A model generated the notes under the pieces. That model searched no databases, was not told the DNA's origin, and saw only the letters and a list, made by a program, of their open reading frames with translations. Positions 2,128 through 28,469 of a stretch of 64,000 nt of DNA are shown here, piece by piece; positions within the stretch are counted from its first letter, which is position 1, and each line of letters opens with the position of its first letter. The position numbers were made by a program, and so were the translations under genes. The DNA lies in the NCBI GenBank assembly GCA_025558095.1, contig JAIVFI010000016.1, positions 434,001-498,000 on the forward strand. The letters are read 5' to 3'. The stretch is from Hyaloraphidium curvatum SAG 235-1. Lineage: Eukaryota; Fungi; Monoblepharomycota.

Positions 2128-4626
2128 TCAAGCCACATGACTGCTACGACTTGGCGGAAGCTCCTTCGGCAGCGCTGGCTGCTTCGTTGGGACGATCCGG
2201 TCGGCTGCTTCACCCATCTGCAGCAACGGAATGAGTCCGATCTTGAGATCCACTTCGCCGATCGCGTCAATCAGGGCCACCGTTTCCGGTGCCAGGTGAC
2301 TCCATTTCTCTCCCTTCAGCCGCGAGATGGCGTGGCCGAGCCCATCCCTGAGTTCGGCGTACTGCTGCATGCTGCGGCACGCGAATGGGACTTCCGCCAC
2401 TGAATGGCCGACAATCGAGAAGTTTGAAATGGTGCAGGCATCATGGTCCTTCCACGCCAGCAGGCGCGACGACCTCAAGATCTTCCATGAGCGGTACTGG
2501 GGGCCCGACCCCGGCTGCGCCGCCGGGAGGACAGTGGGAGTGTCCGTGAGGCTCTTCAGGTAGGTCTCAAGCACAAAGTCCGTCGCCCGATCACGCTCCA
2601 TGCGCTGCCTGTGACGCACGGCGAAGCCGCCGAGGAACCCTGCACGCTTATCCTCGCCGCTCGAGATGTACGACTCCATCAGCTCTGCGATCGCGACATC
2701 CGACATGTTCCTTTCGAACCGCGACCAGTCCGTGTCGCGCAGGCACCTGCGCAGGTGGAACCGAACCAGAGAGGCGATCCTTGTTTCGATCGTTTCCAGG
2801 GCCGAACTTCCAGAAGCGGATTGCAGAGCAGCTTGACGGAAACCTTGCGGAGCTTGCTGAAGCAAGCGGTGAAACAGCCGAACAGCAGAAAGATGGAGCG
2901 GAGAGCTGCCGGGCGAATACATGGGTAGGAACGGATGCAGGTCCGTGGAGATGGGGAAGCCGGTGCCGATTTCCCAGAGGTCGCAGATCATCTCGTCGAC
3001 AAGGATCGAGACGGGCGCAAGGCGGAATGTCCGCAGCTCGTCGAGCAGCATCTGCCGTGGCAGCGGGGAGTGAGCGCAACGATGCGCACAGCACTCACGA
3101 ACTCCTACCTCGCCATTTGTACCGATCTGGGTTGCGAGCAGCCCTCGCAGGTGGTGTAGACCAAGGCAACCGGTCCCTGCGAACGAAAGTCTCAGTGCCT
3201 CCCCGCTCAACCCAAGGTCGGCCGCGCGGTGCAGCTCAAGTTCTGGCAACCAGCGTTCCTCCGTAACAGGTTCCGCTTTCCTGCTCTCCAGGTCCCTGTG
3301 CCAAGTCTCAAGCAGGGCCCGCGCTTCCGGATAACTGCCAGCGTCCGTGTGCCGAACGATTGCAGAACCGATCCCCGTCTCATCGAACAGCCGTACATCG
3401 AGGAAGACGGGGCTCTGAATCAGACGCATGGTCTCTACCACAAACGATGCGATCCATGGCAGCGAAAGCAACGCCGCAGAGTTCCGCAGCACCTCGTCTT
3501 TGCGAGCTTCCAGCACCGGTCGGAGAGCTCCAGAGGTCGCCATGCGTGCAAGGAGACGGATAAGGGTACCAGCTGCTCGCTGCCACTGAGGCGCTTGCGA
3601 AAGATGTTCGACAAGCTTATGAGACTCGGCGATCGCGGTCTCCAGGTGGGTCGCAACATCACGACATGCCAGGAGCGCCAGAATGGTTTGGCAACTGTAG
3701 GCGAGGGTCTCGGGTTCGAAGGGACAGCCGCCCGTGCAAGTCAGGTCCAGCAAAGCGCGAAAGCCGCCTCTGATTCGAAAGTGCTCGACCGTATCGGCCT
3801 CCCGTTGGCAAGCTTGGAGGGCGAGCAAAGCTCTTCGTGCCTGTATTCCGCGCCTGTGAAGGCCTCCGCGATCCACGTCATCCACGATCCCTTGATCGTT
3901 CTTCGCGGAACACCGCAGGGCATCGATGAGGAGCTCGGCTTCAACGTCGGGCGGAGGGCACAAGAGCAGGTGGTCGCCTTCCTTGAGCTGTTGGATGTTC
4001 TGCGGCCGGCGAGAGCGGATTCAGACATGAAGCCGTTCTGTCCCATGAGTCGATCTTCCACCAACCGATCGATCCAGCAGCGGTCGCTCCGCGACGACGG
4101 GAGATTCGAGATCCATGCGGGCTCCATCGAGATCCAGCGTGCCGTTCGGTAGCATTCGGAGGCGCATGTCGGCAAGATCGACGAGGCTTCTCCTTCCGAG
4201 CGCGAGGGAGGCAATGAGCTTGTCCGTGGCCTCGTCCGGCTCCCGGCTCAACGAGCTCCAAGCAAAAGTGCTCGATGTAATGCTTCTCGTAACGTCCACT
4301 TTGCCAGGGATCCCGCTTGGAAAGCTCCGTCCGATGAGCTCCTTGAGCGCGTCCACACCGCGTGCCGCATAGGCGGCGACGGGGAAGTCCACCACTTTGG
4401 ACGGCCAGGGCGGCAAGTGCACATTCACGCGTACTGTTCCTTCTCCTGACGCGCGACCGTGGATAAGGGGCGCCGGGAACGACTGGAGCCGTCGCAGATG
4501 GAGGCCGCCCGGCGAGCTTGAGGAGCGCGAATAGCCGGACGAAACGGAAGGCCGCGGGAGGCCAAGGCCGACCGCCGCATTTCCACGCGTCGGGCTCGAA
4601 TTCGTTCGCGTGAGCGGCGTCTTCAT
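2128..4626 (-). CDS. Hypothetical protein, helical/ARM-like
   Basis: ORFs 4021-4737 and 2128-3963 are joined by a GT-AG intron (LLDRS|NIQQLKEGDHLLLC). The body is long, Leu-rich and helical; no family recognised. Confidence 0.6.
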
Positions 4627-4745
4627 GCTTCGTGAGCGGTTCTCGTCTGTTTCACCGATGCGGTGACTCACCCAACGCTTGATCGGCTTCCGACATGAAA
4701 CAAGAATCAAAAGCTTGAAGCATCTATCTGGTATCAACAGGGAGC

Positions 4746-5890
4746 TTACAAGTCGCTCAATTCCTTGATCGCCCTCGAACAGGTGCTTATGGCGTCGACG
4801 AGCCGGCAGGATTCGTCTAGAGCGCTCGTGTCGCCCATCGGGAGAGGCTGTTCCGCGATGAAAAGCGACAGCGAAGCCAGCCTCGCATTGAGGACATCCA
4901 GATGGTTCGTCAGCGCCTCCCGTGTCGCGCCAGGCGCGGCCGCCTGGCGCATGCTGCCCGGTGCGGGAGGCGAAACGGGGCCGGCGGTGGCGTGCTGCAC
5001 GTCGGAGCGGAGGCGTTTCGCGTCAGGCTGGGCAAAGATCCAGAACACCGCAAGTCAAAGCGACGGCCGGACACCAACCTGCGCAAGCCCGTCCGAAGAA
5101 GCCCGGCGCTTCGACGGCGAAAGCGCGGCCGACGACGCCGCGGCGGCCGGCGGTTCCCGAGCCTCGACGGGTAAAGGAGGCTGTTCTGCCGGCACGTCCG
5201 CTTGCGGCGCCGGCTGGGAAGACTCTGCAGGGTATAGCGTCTCGCAAATGACGCAGAGCTTCTCGCGTTGCCGGTTCCGGATCAGTGGGATCCCGATACA
5301 GTCCGGATTGGTGCACGTGTCGCCGAGCAGCGCCCAGCCGGAAAGCATGCGCTGCCCTATGAGCCGAGCTGCGCGGTCGCTCTGTTCCCTGGCCCGCGTG
5401 GTATCGTACGAAGCAGGTTCGTTCATGTCCTCGTCCGCTCCGCCTTCTTCTGCGTCTCGGGACTCGGGCGCACGCTCCACCGGAACCTCGGCTTCCCCTG
5501 AACGGGCATAACGGTCATGGGCGGTAGCGGACGGGGGTAAACGGGCCCACCTCTCGCTTCGCTCCGCAGCCTCTGCTGGACCGCACCGATCTCCGCCTCC
5601 AACGCGTCCTCTTCGGTCCTCTCGATTCGTGCCGGCGCAGGCGCGCCGCGTCCCGCAGCAGCAGCCGCCAGCGTCTCGCCCGAGTCCCACGCGCTTGCCC
5701 CGGGGGGCACCGGGGCACACAGCGCGCAGAACGCGAACGCCCCGTCCTTCGACCGCATGAGCGGCACCTCGCACCGCGCGCCCCCGCCGCGCGGCCGCCC
5801 GCACTCCGTGTCCGTCATGACCCAGCCGCCCAGGAGGTAGCGGCCCAGCTCTCGGATCGCGCGCTGCTGCCGCGCGTCCTCGTCCTCCAT
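4746..5890 (-). CDS. SSSCA1/ZNRD2 (autoantigen p27)-like protein with two Zn-ribbon domains
   Basis: Two motifs: LGRYLLGGWVMTDTEC...CEVPLMRSK..FCALC and IGQRMLSGWALLGDTC..C.GIPLIRNR..LCVIC. C-terminal helical region; introns present. Confidence 0.82.
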
Positions 5891-6134
5891 GGCCGCGGCG
5901 GCGCGCTCCACCGGTATTCCCATCATATGGAGAAAAGGAGCGGCCCGTCCGACGCCGGGAAACACGGCAGCGAGACCGAATGGAAGTGCGGTGAACACTG
6001 GTCTCGTCGCGAGCGCTGGCGTGGTCGCGATCAACATTGGAAGGCCCGTGCCTCTCCCATTGCCAAGCAGCCTTACACTCCGAATCCCGGACAAAGGACA
6101 CGGTTCGATTTAGCACAGAGCAGCCGGAGACGCG

Positions 6135-23834: not shown

Positions 23835-24573
23835 CTAGTATGAGTCGCCCCTCCCGTAGTCACCACCGCCCCTGCCCCAGCTGTCTCCCGAATCCCGGCG
23901 GTTGTACCCGTCGCGACCGCCGTACCCGCCACGGCCGCCGTACCCGCCGCGGCCGCCGTACCCGCCGCGGCTCCCGTAGCCTCCGCGGGGCGACCTGCGC
24001 TCGGTGCGCTCGCCCCTCGGCCCCGCCTTGTCCAGGCGGACCTGGCGGCCCATGAGGTCCTGAAATGGTTGCCATTAGCATGCGACGTCGGGGAGAAAAT
24101 GGAGGCGCCTGCCCACCTGCCCGTTCAGTGCCTGTACGGCGGCGTCGGCCTCGGCGGGCTCGGTGAAGGTGACGAACGCGAAGCCGCGGCTGCGGCCGGT
24201 GTCGCGGTCCCGCACGACGGTGAGCTCGGCGATCTGGCCGTGGGCGGAGAGCACCTCGCGCAGGGCCTCCTCGTCGGCGGACCACGCGAGGTTGCCGATG
24301 AACACCTTGACGCCTTCATATTGAACGGGGCATCAGGTACGGGAGTTCTAGGCGCTGCGAGCGAGGACACCCACCGCGCTCCTCCGGCGTCGGCTCGGCG
24401 GCGGGCGGCGCGTCCTCGGGTTCGTTCTGGAAGAGGCGCGCCGACGCGGAGAAGGCGCGCGGCGCGGCGGCGCGCGGGGCCGCGGCCAGCAGCGCGGACG
24501 CGGCGGGCTGCGCGCGCGACAAAGAGCCGGAGAGCGCGGAAGCGACGCGGACGACGGTTCGGAGGCCGGACAT
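23835..24573 (-). CDS. Glycine-rich RRM RNA-binding protein, probable mitochondrial transit peptide
   Basis: RNP2 VFIGNL, RNP1 RGFAFVTF and an RGG tail. N-terminus is R/A/S-rich (RAFSASARLF). Two introns. Confidence 0.9.
23905..23988 (-). repeat. 18-bp coding tandem repeat (RGGYGG)
   Basis: About 4 imperfect copies of ccgtacccgccgcggccg on the + strand. Confidence 0.8.
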
Positions 24574-24816: not shown

Positions 24817-26561
24817 TCAGCTGAACCTGAAGATGTCCGGCATTGCCGGCCCCAATCCGTGCCCAGCATGCCCCAGCCCCGCAAACGGCGACGGCGGGTG
24901 CCCCGCAAACTGCCTCTGCGCAGGCTCCGAGGACGACCCGACGTCGCCCGCGGTCCAGTCCAGATCGTCGTCGAAATCCATGTGGTGATCCTCCTCCGCC
25001 GGCGCCGAGTCAGACCGCGGAGCCAGCGGCTCCTCCGCGGCATCGGGCGGCTGCCACCCGCCCGCGTGCGCCCCATCCGGCAACCCCTGCCCCGCCGGCT
25101 GCCCCGCCGGTCCCGGCGGAACCAGCCCCCCGCCCAGCGTGGGCGGCCCCTGCCCCGGCTGAGCCATCGCCTGCAGCGACGACAGCGCCTGCAGCTGCTG
25201 CATCGCCGCGAGCTGCTGCGGCATCGTCGCCATGAGACCGGGGATCGCGGCCTGCATGGCCATCTGCGCCATGTACGGGTTCGGCACCATGCCGCCGCCC
25301 ATGCCCATGTAGCCTGGCATGAACATGTCGCCGCCGGGAAAGGGGAAGGCGTTCTTGGACATCTTGTTGACCCTGTGCGGGGAAGGAGCGTTAGTGATTG
25401 CGCGACGAAGGGAAAGCAATAGACAGCTCACTTCCTGGCGTACCGAAGACCGCACGCGTTGCAGAGCCTGATTAGAGCAGGGTCAGTTGATGAAGAAAGA
25501 TGGCTGCCAGAGCGCGGCCGCCACCCACGTCTTCTGCCCGCTCGGGCCGCGGCGCCACTCGGGCGAGTCCGCCTTGCCACACTCCTCGCACTTGAACGGC
25601 GTGCCATCGGGGTTCTTCTTGGGCGCCGTCGACGCCTTGGAGCGCCGCATCTGCGGGGGCGATTCGGACAGGCTGCGATTGCCCGCGGGTTGAGCAAAAG
25701 AAGATAAGGACGCAGAGTCCGAAATGCCCACCCGAGGACGCTGCCAGACGAGGATTGCCCGGCCGAGATCGGGATCGGACCGCTGCCTTCGCCCTCCTCC
25801 TTGGCCCGCGCCGACGTGCCACTGGAGCTCTTGCGCGGCGGCGCCGGCCGAGGTGGTGGTGGCGTCGGGCGGACCGAAGGCGGCCTGCCCGGCGGGAACG
25901 CGGGCTGCGGCGACATGGGCGGCGGCGTCGCAAGCGTGCGGAAGGCGGGCACGGCGGAGCCGGCCAGGGCGTCGGAGGAAGGCTGGGGCGGGCCGAGGTC
26001 GCCGCGGCGCGGCACCGGGCGGCCGCGGTGGCCGTGCAGGTCCAGCAGCTCCGCGGCGGCGACGGCCAGCTCGCGCACGGTGTCGTCGATGTCCTCCAGC
26101 AGCGGCGGCAGCGCGTTCGCGGCGATCGGGCGCAATGCAGCGGCCTGGACGGGGTCGCCAGCGGCAGCCGAGAACAGGTCCTGGGCAAACTGCCTGCGCG
26201 CCAGGTAGTAGCGGTCCAGCACGTCGTGCATGGCTGCGGTGTCCGCGGCCTCGGCCTTGATTTCCACGTCGTCTGCCCCGGGTGCTGCGGGCGGGCCGCC
26301 CTGCGGCACGGGCGGGGTCGCGGCCGACACGCCGCCGCCGCCCAGCACCATCCACAGCACCAGCGCGGCGGCCTGCTGCACGGCGCCGTCGGCGTCGATC
26401 ACGAGCGGCCGCACGAGGCCGACGATGTCGTTCGCCCGCAGCGCCGCCCGCAGCGGCGGCTGCCCCGCGAGCTCGATCAGCGCCTTGACGAGCACGAGCT
26501 TCTCGCGGTTCCACCGGTCGAGCCCCGCGACGGGCGGTGCCTTCGCCCCGCGCGCCTCCAT
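24817..26561 (-). CDS. GATA zinc-finger transcription factor (C-X2-C-X18-C-X2-C) with N-terminal ARM-like repeats
   Basis: Spliced finger CEECGKADSPEWRRGPSGQKT|LCNACGLRYARK. M/Q/P-rich C-terminal region and two helical SPAG6-like units at the N-terminus. Confidence 0.88.
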
Positions 26562-26828
26562 CCTCGCGGCCGGCGGAGGCGGCGCGAGCGGGCAGGCGCC
26601 AATGGCGGTTTTGGAGTGCACCGCCCGCCACCGGGCGCCCAGCAATCGCACGGAGCGGAAGACGGAAGGCGTCCCCAAACGGGCACAAACCAAGTTCCGA
26701 GCCCGCCTGTCTCTGGCTGATTTTAGAGAGGATGATTTGACCAGCAATCGGGCTGGCTGCCCGGATTCGTGCAAAGCGGCGTGCGGGCGGCGTGCGGAAA
26801 TGATCCATGATTCATCGCAGCCGATAAG

Positions 26829-28469
26829 GTGCCAAGCTCGAGATCGGAGCCTCAGCGAGCTTCTGTTACTGCTCTCCGTCTCTCTCTCAAGGAATGTAAT
26901 CTCCCTGATGCGTCGCTTTGCACCGATCGCGTGCGGAGCGCGAATGCCGCCCGGAGGCCTTCACCTGCCCGTGTGGCATTCAGGGCTCCAAAGGTAGCTC
27001 CGAAGCTCAGGGCTCGGTCACCAACCAGCGCTCCGCGGCAGCTCGACACGCCGTCAGCGGTGGTCCCCAATGCGCAGGCAGCGCCTGCCCCCCCCAAAGG
27101 ACGCGATGGCAAGGCCGCGCCCGACCACGGCACGGTCTTCCCGCAGGACCGCGTGTCGCAAATGACCATAACTATCGCGCCAGCCGACTGGGCGGCGATG
27201 CAGGAGGACATGGAAAAGATCTACGGTTCTGCTTGGAGGATGTACGAGTCGGCGAAGGACATGGCGCCCGACGAGAAGATGGCCTTCATGAAGCTCATGG
27301 CGTCCATCAGGTCCGCGGGCAAGCCGGGCGCGCCTCCGGTCGACACCTCGCTCCTGACGCCGGTCCAGGTGGACGCGGCTAGGAAGCTGGGCGAGGAGGT
27401 CGCGGCCAAGGGCAGCAACACCGAGGTGCCGACGCCCATGTGGGTCCCGGCGACCGTCAGCTTCGGCGACAACAAAGGCAAGTGGGAGAACGTCCAAGTC
27501 CGCTACAAGGGCGCGAGCTCCCTGAATCCCTGGACGAGGGGGATCCTCTACCTGCCCTTCAAGTTGAAGAGCAAAGACAAGTTCTTTGGATTCAAGGAAC
27601 TCGCGGTCGCCAACAACTACAACGACCCGGCTGGGATGCGCGACATCCTGATGTACGGCCTCCTCCGTGACGCAGGTCTCCCCTCCTTGGGCACAGCGCC
27701 CTACGAGGTGTCCCTGGACCACGGCCAAGGGCCCCAGCGCCTCGGCCTCTACACCGCGACCGAGGTGGTCGACGACACGGGGATAAAGGCACACTTTGGG
27801 GACGACGACGGCAACATCTACAAGGTGGAGGGCACCGCCGCCTCCCTGGCCGAGGGCACGCGCGGGCAGATCCCCGAATCGTTCGAGAAGCGGAACAACA
27901 AGAAGTCCCCAGGATGGGCCGACGTAGAGGCGCTCTACGATGCCCTGCATGCGCTGACCCGCACGTCGGACCCGGCTGCGTGGCGCGCCGGCCTGGATGC
28001 CGTCTTCGACACCGACATTTTCCTCGGCTGGCTGGCCATCGTGACCTTCGTTGCCCATGCGGACACGTACGGTACCGCGGCGCACAACTTTTACGTCTAC
28101 AACAACCCAAAGTCGAAGAAGCTGACCTGGGTTTCCTGGGACAACAATAGCACATTCTTTCCCAAGGACATGGAGAGGTCCCCGCTGGACCGATCCAAGA
28201 CGGCCGCCACGTGGCCGCTCATCCGCTTCCTGCTCGACGACCCCGCCTACGCCGAGCGCTACCGGACGGTGATGGCCGGGCTGGCAGGCACGGTGCTCGC
28301 CAAGGACACGCTGGTCGAGCGAATAAGGAGTGTGGGGGCGGTGATCGGGCCCCGGGCAGAGGCGGACCTGGGGAAGGAGGGGTACGAGACCGCGGTGCAG
28401 GATATCGTGGGGTTCGTCGAGGTGAGGGCGAAGGAGCTGGAGGCGTTCCTTGCGGGCGCATCGGTGTGA
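26829..28469 (+). CDS. CotH kinase family protein (start uncertain)
   Basis: VRYKGASS, LPFKLK, DPAGMRDIL.Y, LGLYTATEVVDD, GNIYK, HNFYVY and WVSWDNN. Confidence 0.9.
   Translation: MPSSRSEPQRASVTALRLSLKECNLPDASLCTDRVRSANAARRPSPARVAFRAPKVAPKLRARSPTSAPRQLDTPSAVVPNAQAAPAPPKGRDGKAAPDHGTVFPQDRVSQMTITIAPADWAAMQEDMEKIYGSAWRMYESAKDMAPDEKMAFMKLMASIRSAGKPGAPPVDTSLLTPVQVDAARKLGEEVAAKGSNTEVPTPMWVPATVSFGDNKGKWENVQVRYKGASSLNPWTRGILYLPFKLKSKDKFFGFKELAVANNYNDPAGMRDILMYGLLRDAGLPSLGTAPYEVSLDHGQGPQRLGLYTATEVVDDTGIKAHFGDDDGNIYKVEGTAASLAEGTRGQIPESFEKRNNKKSPGWADVEALYDALHALTRTSDPAAWRAGLDAVFDTDIFLGWLAIVTFVAHADTYGTAAHNFYVYNNPKSKKLTWVSWDNNSTFFPKDMERSPLDRSKTAATWPLIRFLLDDPAYAERYRTVMAGLAGTVLAKDTLVERIRSVGAVIGPRAEADLGKEGYETAVQDIVGFVEVRAKELEAFLAGASV

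Follow-up and report, generated by a model that had tools for sequence, protein, structure and literature searches.

The window, a stretch of 64,000 nucleotides of Hyaloraphidium curvatum DNA, carries on its minus strand a gene (24817-26561) which most probably codes for a single GATA-type regulator whose N-terminus consists of the initial ~70 residues of the flagellar protein SPAG6/PF16, present twice in tandem, this module being used as a protein interface. To this reading as a whole we give a probability of about 0.78. The sequence-only reading of the same DNA had proposed that a duplicated piece of an axonemal gene was recruited into a DNA-binding regulator and, in view of the homology of the units and of the fusions contained in one open reading frame, this proposal appears to be largely right.

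Gene model and GATA finger

The gene is composed of four exons (24817-26561, stop included) and codes for a protein of 521 aa. Its exon-by-exon translation is identical to the deposited protein DFJ74DRAFT_671279 (hereafter P0001; 521 aa, annotated as hypothetical protein of Hyaloraphidium curvatum), in agreement with the coding range previously given for this gene. The exons were searched individually and the database record was used as the full-length protein. The parts of the gene and of its product are as follows.

25732-26561, minus strand: exon 1, codons 1-276 plus two bases of codon 277, with the two-unit N-terminal module and a P/S-rich linker
26334-26534, minus strand: unit 1 (residues 10-76), SPAG6/PF16-like N-terminal helix and ARM-1
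26244-26333, minus strand: linker between the units (residues 77-106), G/P/A-rich and then acidic, predicted to be disordered, not conserved
26034-26243, minus strand: unit 2 (residues 107-176), diverged second copy of this unit with a HEAT-like second half
25673-25731, minus strand: intron 1, 59 nt, GT..AG
25529-25672, minus strand: exon 2, basic stretch and N-terminal half of the GATA finger (C305, C308)
25468-25528, minus strand: intron 2, 61 nt, GT..AG, within the GATA finger
25432-25467, minus strand: exon 3, C-terminal half of the GATA finger (C327, C330) and start of the basic tail
25373-25431, minus strand: intron 3, 59 nt, GT..AG, with an ACTAAC branch-site-like motif inside
24817-25372, minus strand: exon 4, C-terminal tail, M/Q/P-rich and acidic, conserved FRFS and then the stop codon
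Residues 177-284 of P0001: P/S-rich linker
Residues 285-297 of P0001: basic stretch
Residues 305-337 of P0001: GATA finger, CX2C-X18-CX2C, split by intron 2
Residues 338-521 of P0001: tail, M/Q/P-rich and then acidic

At the junction of exons 1 and 2, P0001 reads SVLG followed by LSESPP. The intron formerly placed at about 25653-25725 is present, but its actual borders are 25731-25673, and two further introns, one inside the finger (25528-25468) and the other at 25431-25373, were absent from that earlier model. The two units were recovered at the positions previously proposed (26534-26334 and 26243-26034) and the M/Q/P-rich tail is real: it is 49% identical to the tail of the orthologue, both ending in the conserved FRFS. 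Between orthologues, the units, the finger and the tail form conserved islands separated by variable linkers, the inter-unit linker being poorly aligned. Since the former are conserved whereas the linkers are not, the units, the finger and the tail should be under constraint. A divergent CotH-like ORF (26829-28469) begins 268 bp upstream of the start codon of the GATA gene, and therefore the N-terminus cannot extend much further; the region between them (26562-26828) is probably a bidirectional promoter region shared by both. Immediately downstream, the GATA gene is followed on the minus strand (23835-24305) by a gene for an RRM protein whose tail is RGG-rich.

Pfam analysis detected the GATA family (PF00320) over residues 305-337 with a score of 51.8 bits for a cut-off of 26.8. 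The finger is built on the cysteines C305, C308, C327 and C330 with a loop of 18 residues, which confirms the X18 finger (CX2C-X18-CX2C) initially seen in the sequence. As part of the main reading, the gene product is predicted to be a sequence-specific DNA-binding regulator with a single X18 GATA finger. In fungi, the white-collar factors WC-1 and WC-2 are single-finger X18 GATA factors with PAS/LOV domains, and they are paired by their PAS domains. The H. curvatum factor resembles them by its one CX2CX18CX2C finger, the core of which (SPEWR.GP...LCNACGL) is very similar, and by the possession of a distinct domain for protein interaction, through which two paralogous factors could be paired. 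The interaction domain differs, being PAS/LOV in the white-collar factors and a putative SPAG6-derived helical module here. No PAS domain was found in P0001 or in P0003, an orthologue of the paralogue described below, in which Pfam finds GATA only, and in this respect these proteins are unlike white-collar factors. Among GATA factors, a known class of regulator, this combination of domains is new.

Likeness of the units to the SPAG6/PF16 N-terminus

Exon 1 was compared by phmmer with all PDB sequences. Chlamydomonas PF16 was the first match (E 0.0031, query 14-71 to PF16 10-67), followed by mouse SPAG6. In an independent search with the N-terminus of the paralogue, SPAG6 (E 0.0046) and PF16 were again on top, over residues 10-79. 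In the three separate single-sequence searches of the PDB, SPAG6 or PF16 was always first and always through SPAG6/PF16 residues 8-79; the SPAG6 N-terminal pattern that the sequence-only reading had given agrees with the SPAG6 and PF16 chain sequences in the PDB. Profiles of five sequences each were then used, A3 for unit 1 and A4 for unit 2. Against the PDB, profile A3 gave 59.2 bits with PF16 (E 3e-15) in a single ungapped stretch (4-64 to 9-69) and 48.8 bits with SPAG6 (E 5e-12), versus 21.6 bits with ODAD2, the best other natural ARM protein. With hhalign, unit 1 matched a SPAG6 N-terminal profile of 12 sequences at 98.6% (E 8.6e-16). The earlier claim that SPAG6 is a better match than generic ARM/HEAT repeats is thus borne out for unit 1. 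The alignment with SPAG6 residues 8-69 is ungapped and covers the N-terminal helix and ARM-1, and the unit is found at residue ~10 in both SPAG6 and the GATA factor. The name of armadillo unit formerly given to these repeats was right as regards the likeness to SPAG6, but each unit corresponds to the SPAG6 N-terminal helix plus ARM-1 and not to an armadillo repeat alone. At the level of sequence, these comparisons establish that unit 1 is homologous to the N-terminus of SPAG6/PF16.

A profile of the two paralogues was run against 1.84 billion representative proteins and gave 37 matches at E <= 0.001. Four of them are members of the family, and SPAG6 N-termini (defined as matches to canonical SPAG6 starting within its first 15 residues) account for 30 of the other 33, including those of the chytrid Gaertneriomyces and of Ciona. 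With the canonical SPAG6 of diverse eukaryotes, the unit 1 profile reached 48-62 bits. None of the other ARM repeats inside SPAG6 was matched by the unit profiles.

Unit 2 is related to unit 1 beyond chance, as previously suggested: in hhalign comparisons of the five-sequence profiles, the two units aligned in the same register at 90.6% (E 1.3e-6). Its likeness to SPAG6 is also found, but is weaker. Alone against the PDB, unit 2 had SPAG6 residues 8-64 as top match, which was not significant (E 1.2); profile A4 gave 28 bits with SPAG6 (E 1.6e-5, 7-65 to 8-66) and hhalign with the SPAG6 N-terminal profile gave 93.5%. The second half of unit 2 scores equally with profile A4 on SPAG6 and on HEAT repeats (PP2A-A, designed alphaRep), and it has drifted in the direction of a HEAT-like consensus.

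SPAG6/PF16 is the 'spring' protein of the central-pair C1 microtubule (PDB 7N6G, 7SQC, 9IJJ), of which residues ~8-69 are shared with unit 1 and, more weakly, with unit 2. It differs from the GATA factor by its ~510 aa, its 11 ARM repeats, its conserved C-terminal motif and its binding to tubulin tails on the C1 microtubule, whereas the GATA factor has only the first ~70 residues, twice in tandem and ahead of a zinc finger, and its organism has no flagellum. No SPAG6 match was obtained after residue 176 of the GATA factor, so that the ~500 aa, the 11 ARM repeats and the C-terminal motif of a SPAG6 are not found in it. Judged by these features, the GATA factor is not a SPAG6 and would contain a SPAG6-derived module only. 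With the generic ARM/HEAT proteins (APC, beta-catenin, importin-alpha, PP2A-A, designed ARM), the predicted module has in common the class of helical repeat fold (VIA Z 6-7); the natural ones do not exceed 22 bits for unit 1, leave the N-terminal helix unmatched and have no GATA finger.

Related genes and flagellar context

A search of the whole H. curvatum genome (G000) with the module revealed one paralogue, located on a contig other than that of the window gene, C30 (E 9.5e-6). The third match of this search, on G000:C3, was rejected as a chance match inside a membrane protein.

G000:C30:155000-157200 (L004:2042-4168 and a downstream exon at ~L004:2010), minus strand: paralogue, two units, long Q-rich linker and X18 GATA finger
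L010:8240-8833 and L011:7457-7609: RRM gene in the two related assemblies, the order RRM - GATA - TMEM135-like region being conserved

In the paralogue, a single ORF of 708 codons contains the two units, the long Q-rich linker and the first half of the finger. The second half follows an intron, the position and phase of which are those of intron 2 in the window gene and in the orthologous locus L010. The family members from the search of representative proteins are P0002 and P0004, orthologues of the window gene, and P0003, an orthologue of the paralogue, in which module and finger are carried by one ORF of 904 aa. P0002 and P0003 come from the Logan assembly of SRR26194948 and P0004 from that of SRR23967301. 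The loci of P0002 and P0004 (L010 and L011) are syntenic with the window: the finger lies just downstream of the module on the same strand, the flanking genes being a TMEM135-like gene and, on the opposite side, the RRM gene. Residues 9-521 of P0001 are matched by L010. In the word-indexed set of 5.8 billion proteins, P0002 retrieved only itself and P0001, and the open frame over exon 1 retrieved P0001 only, the sensitivity of this search being limited by alanine-rich words.

The deposited model, the 708-codon and 904-aa ORFs and the synteny all agree with the fusion of module and GATA finger first proposed from the sequence, and indicate that both belong to one gene. The sequence-only reading had also raised the idea of other fusions with this module, and the paralogue on G000:C30 is such a fusion. 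As the architecture is present in both paralogues and in three genomes, the fusion should predate the duplication into paralogues and the divergence of these genomes. On proteins other than SPAG6, the module was not detected outside H. curvatum and the two related assemblies, either in the 1.84-billion library or in the 5.8-billion word index. That no SPAG6-GATA fusion had been described was stated at the outset, and a search of the literature likewise found no description of one.

H. curvatum belongs to the monoblepharid fungi and has been described as non-flagellated (PMC8371127, PMC10459994), which is the situation in which the fusion had been expected to be of special interest. According to the same papers, a possible independent loss of the flagellum in Hyaloraphidium "needs further analysis", and for Galindo et al. 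2021 it still needed genomic confirmation. Model searches of the H. curvatum genome gave no match for Tektin, Radial_spoke (radial-spoke-head) or IFT46. The genes found were the following.

G000:C23:214175-214857: CFAP20 domain, one gene in the genome
G000:C38:207016-207378, C4:807854-808180 and C16:334465-334864: dynein heavy chain, three loci
G000:C30 ~375900-379500 (L009 ~2400-6000), plus strand: eroded full-length SPAG6-like gene, found with a chytrid SPAG6 query

The loss of flagellar genes looks extensive but incomplete. As for an intact SPAG6, a full-length homologue is present in the genome, but it is eroded: its product is only ~25% identical to chytrid SPAG6, with which it is collinear from the N-terminal unit to the C-terminal motif, and it carries a long low-complexity C-terminal extension. 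This gene is on the same contig as the GATA paralogue, at a distance of ~220 kb. Orthologues that are 55-56% identical to it were detected in two metagenome contigs as well as in both related assemblies (L013-L016). The two metagenome contigs, L015 (ENA ERZ28593542) and L016 (JGI 3300043314), encode a close relative of the eroded protein, so relatives of the lineage occur in sampled environments. Another metagenomic protein, P0042, was set aside: it is a canonical SPAG6 but comes from unrelated metagenomes, and is uninformative on the relatives of this lineage.

For residues 5-77 of SPAG6, the two GATA genes were the only matches of the chytrid SPAG6 search in the genome. The eroded gene is of the same ancestral family as the GATA units, but its own N-terminal unit resembles SPAG6 less closely than GATA-factor unit 1 does: the unit 1 profile gave 22 bits on it and 8-15 bits on its orthologues, versus the 48-62 bits on canonical SPAG6. 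From this difference, SPAG6 was most likely still canonical when the module was copied, and the module would then have been kept under tighter constraint than its parent gene.

Origin and role of the module

The N-terminal region was modelled with AF2 over residues 1-180 and 1-185 (pLDDT 76.6 and 78.6, pTM 0.67 and 0.68, respectively). In both models each unit consists of four helices, of which the first is long and the other three are shorter, and disorder is restricted to the inter-unit linker; the pLDDT is 85-92 over unit 1 and below 50 over linker residues 77-95. This suggests that the N-terminal module would be one compact domain. With Foldseek, PF16 chains were ranked first for both models (E 0.004-0.012). 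The VIA structural aligner superposed PF16 with a Z of 6.6 over 72 residues at 28% identity (model 7-79 to chain 3-74), a score with which other ARM proteins tie (Z 6-7), so that it does not separate them. Because structure alone shows the ARM class only, the specificity for SPAG6 rests on the sequence comparisons. Many VIA matches lay both units onto two consecutive ARM repeats, which fits a packing in cis into a small ARM solenoid. The complex prediction for unit 1 with unit 2 scored 0.01 and counts neither way.

The units could be ordinary ARM/HEAT-like repeats whose likeness to SPAG6 is due to chance or convergence in alanine- and leucine-rich helices. Such repeats would account for the tie in VIA, for the language-model neighbours (the ESM Atlas feature search gave generic ARM/HEAT clusters only) and for the high summed scores of designed ARM and alphaRep proteins; the signals of Pfam HEAT_EZ or Arm, which would also be expected, are sub-threshold only (on exon 1 no Arm match and HEAT_EZ at E 1.7; in the orthologue P0002, 18.4 bits for Arm, PF00514, the threshold of which is 20.6), Pfam being without a model for this N-terminal part of SPAG6. 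The summed scores, however, are made of half-unit matches, 5-9 of them in the designed ARM proteins, of ~17 bits each with profile A3, whereas the 59 bits of PF16 come from one ungapped stretch which includes the N-terminal helix. Moreover, the remote matches among 1.84 billion proteins are almost all SPAG6 N-termini, SPAG6's own other ARM repeats are left unmatched and the unit has the same place in both proteins. Ordinary repeats are therefore already largely refuted as an explanation, and their probability is minimal. Hardly more credible is a wrong merging of two genes, the first for a small ARM-like protein and the second, further downstream, for a GATA factor that begins at Met285. An in-frame ATG (25650) does lie just past the intron acceptor formerly proposed, and prokaryote-style gene callers split the orthologous loci. 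The paralogue and P0003 nevertheless have one continuous ORF each that covers both parts, three genomes agree in the order, strand and spacing of these parts, and in the window the frame of exon 1 is open to the GT donor, the 59-nt intron restoring the frame as in the deposited model.

The source of the module could also be a relative of SPAG6 and not canonical SPAG6 itself, namely the lineage's eroded SPAG6-like gene or a paralogue of the FAP194 type; this we consider unlikely. A divergent SPAG6-like gene is indeed on the contig of the paralogue, and FAP194 is highly similar to PF16 in sequence and in dimerisation interfaces (Han et al. 2022, PMC9113940). The profile of unit 1, however, prefers canonical SPAG6 to the resident gene and to its orthologues by the scores given above, and FAP194, which is modelled in the central-apparatus structure of PF16, did not provide a single chain among the 42 PDB matches. 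If the ancestor of the eroded gene was the source, it would still have been canonical at that time, and this explanation merges with a copy from canonical SPAG6.

In the origin from canonical SPAG6 that we favour, a 5' fragment of the still-canonical gene would have been copied, with the copy being doubled in tandem and attached to a GATA gene; the fusion would have taken place before the duplication into two paralogues and before the divergence of the three carrier genomes. Exon capture was considered and rejected: in the SPAG6 of Gaertneriomyces (L020, one fungal gene), the first intron lies after residue 100 and not at the end of the module (~76-80).

PF16 is composed of an N-terminal helix spanning residues 4-29 along with 11 ARM repeats, and the N termini are where its molecules dimerise (Han et al. 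2022, PMC9113940). Because the same region lies at this dimerising end, the module is most likely a protein-protein interface and, by analogy with PF16, would probably serve in dimerisation or partner binding. It may bring together two molecules of the factor, or the factor and its paralogue, as do the PAS domains in the white-collar GATA factors; alternatively, the two units may pack in cis to form a small ARM solenoid docking a partner. Binding to GATA-type sites would be the task of the finger, and activation of transcription that of the M/Q/P-rich acidic tail. A bolder idea, to which we give little chance, is that the module may still recognise a SPAG6-type N-terminus, both GATA factors pairing with the product of the eroded SPAG6-like gene or, in an ancestor that still had a flagellum, with unassembled SPAG6. 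Such recognition would explain why an eroded SPAG6 coexists with a near-canonical SPAG6 head on factors kept in all three genomes. If true, the pool of this flagellar structural protein would be linked directly to transcription, by a connection that would have outlived the loss of the flagellum and been rewired.

After the loss of the flagellum, axonemal genes are usually simply lost and, to our knowledge, the reuse of a single domain of such genes has rarely been documented. Here, the dimer-forming head of a core protein of the central pair appears to have been copied, doubled and put on a DNA-binding factor, and to have been kept as two paralogues in at least three genomes. This would be a clear example of a structural flagellar module exapted into gene regulation, in which the full-length SPAG6 of the lineage has moved further from the canonical form than unit 1 has. 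It would mark off residues ~8-69 of SPAG6 as an evolutionarily separable unit, and it may serve as a molecular marker with which to date what happened around the independent loss of the flagellum proposed for Hyaloraphidium.
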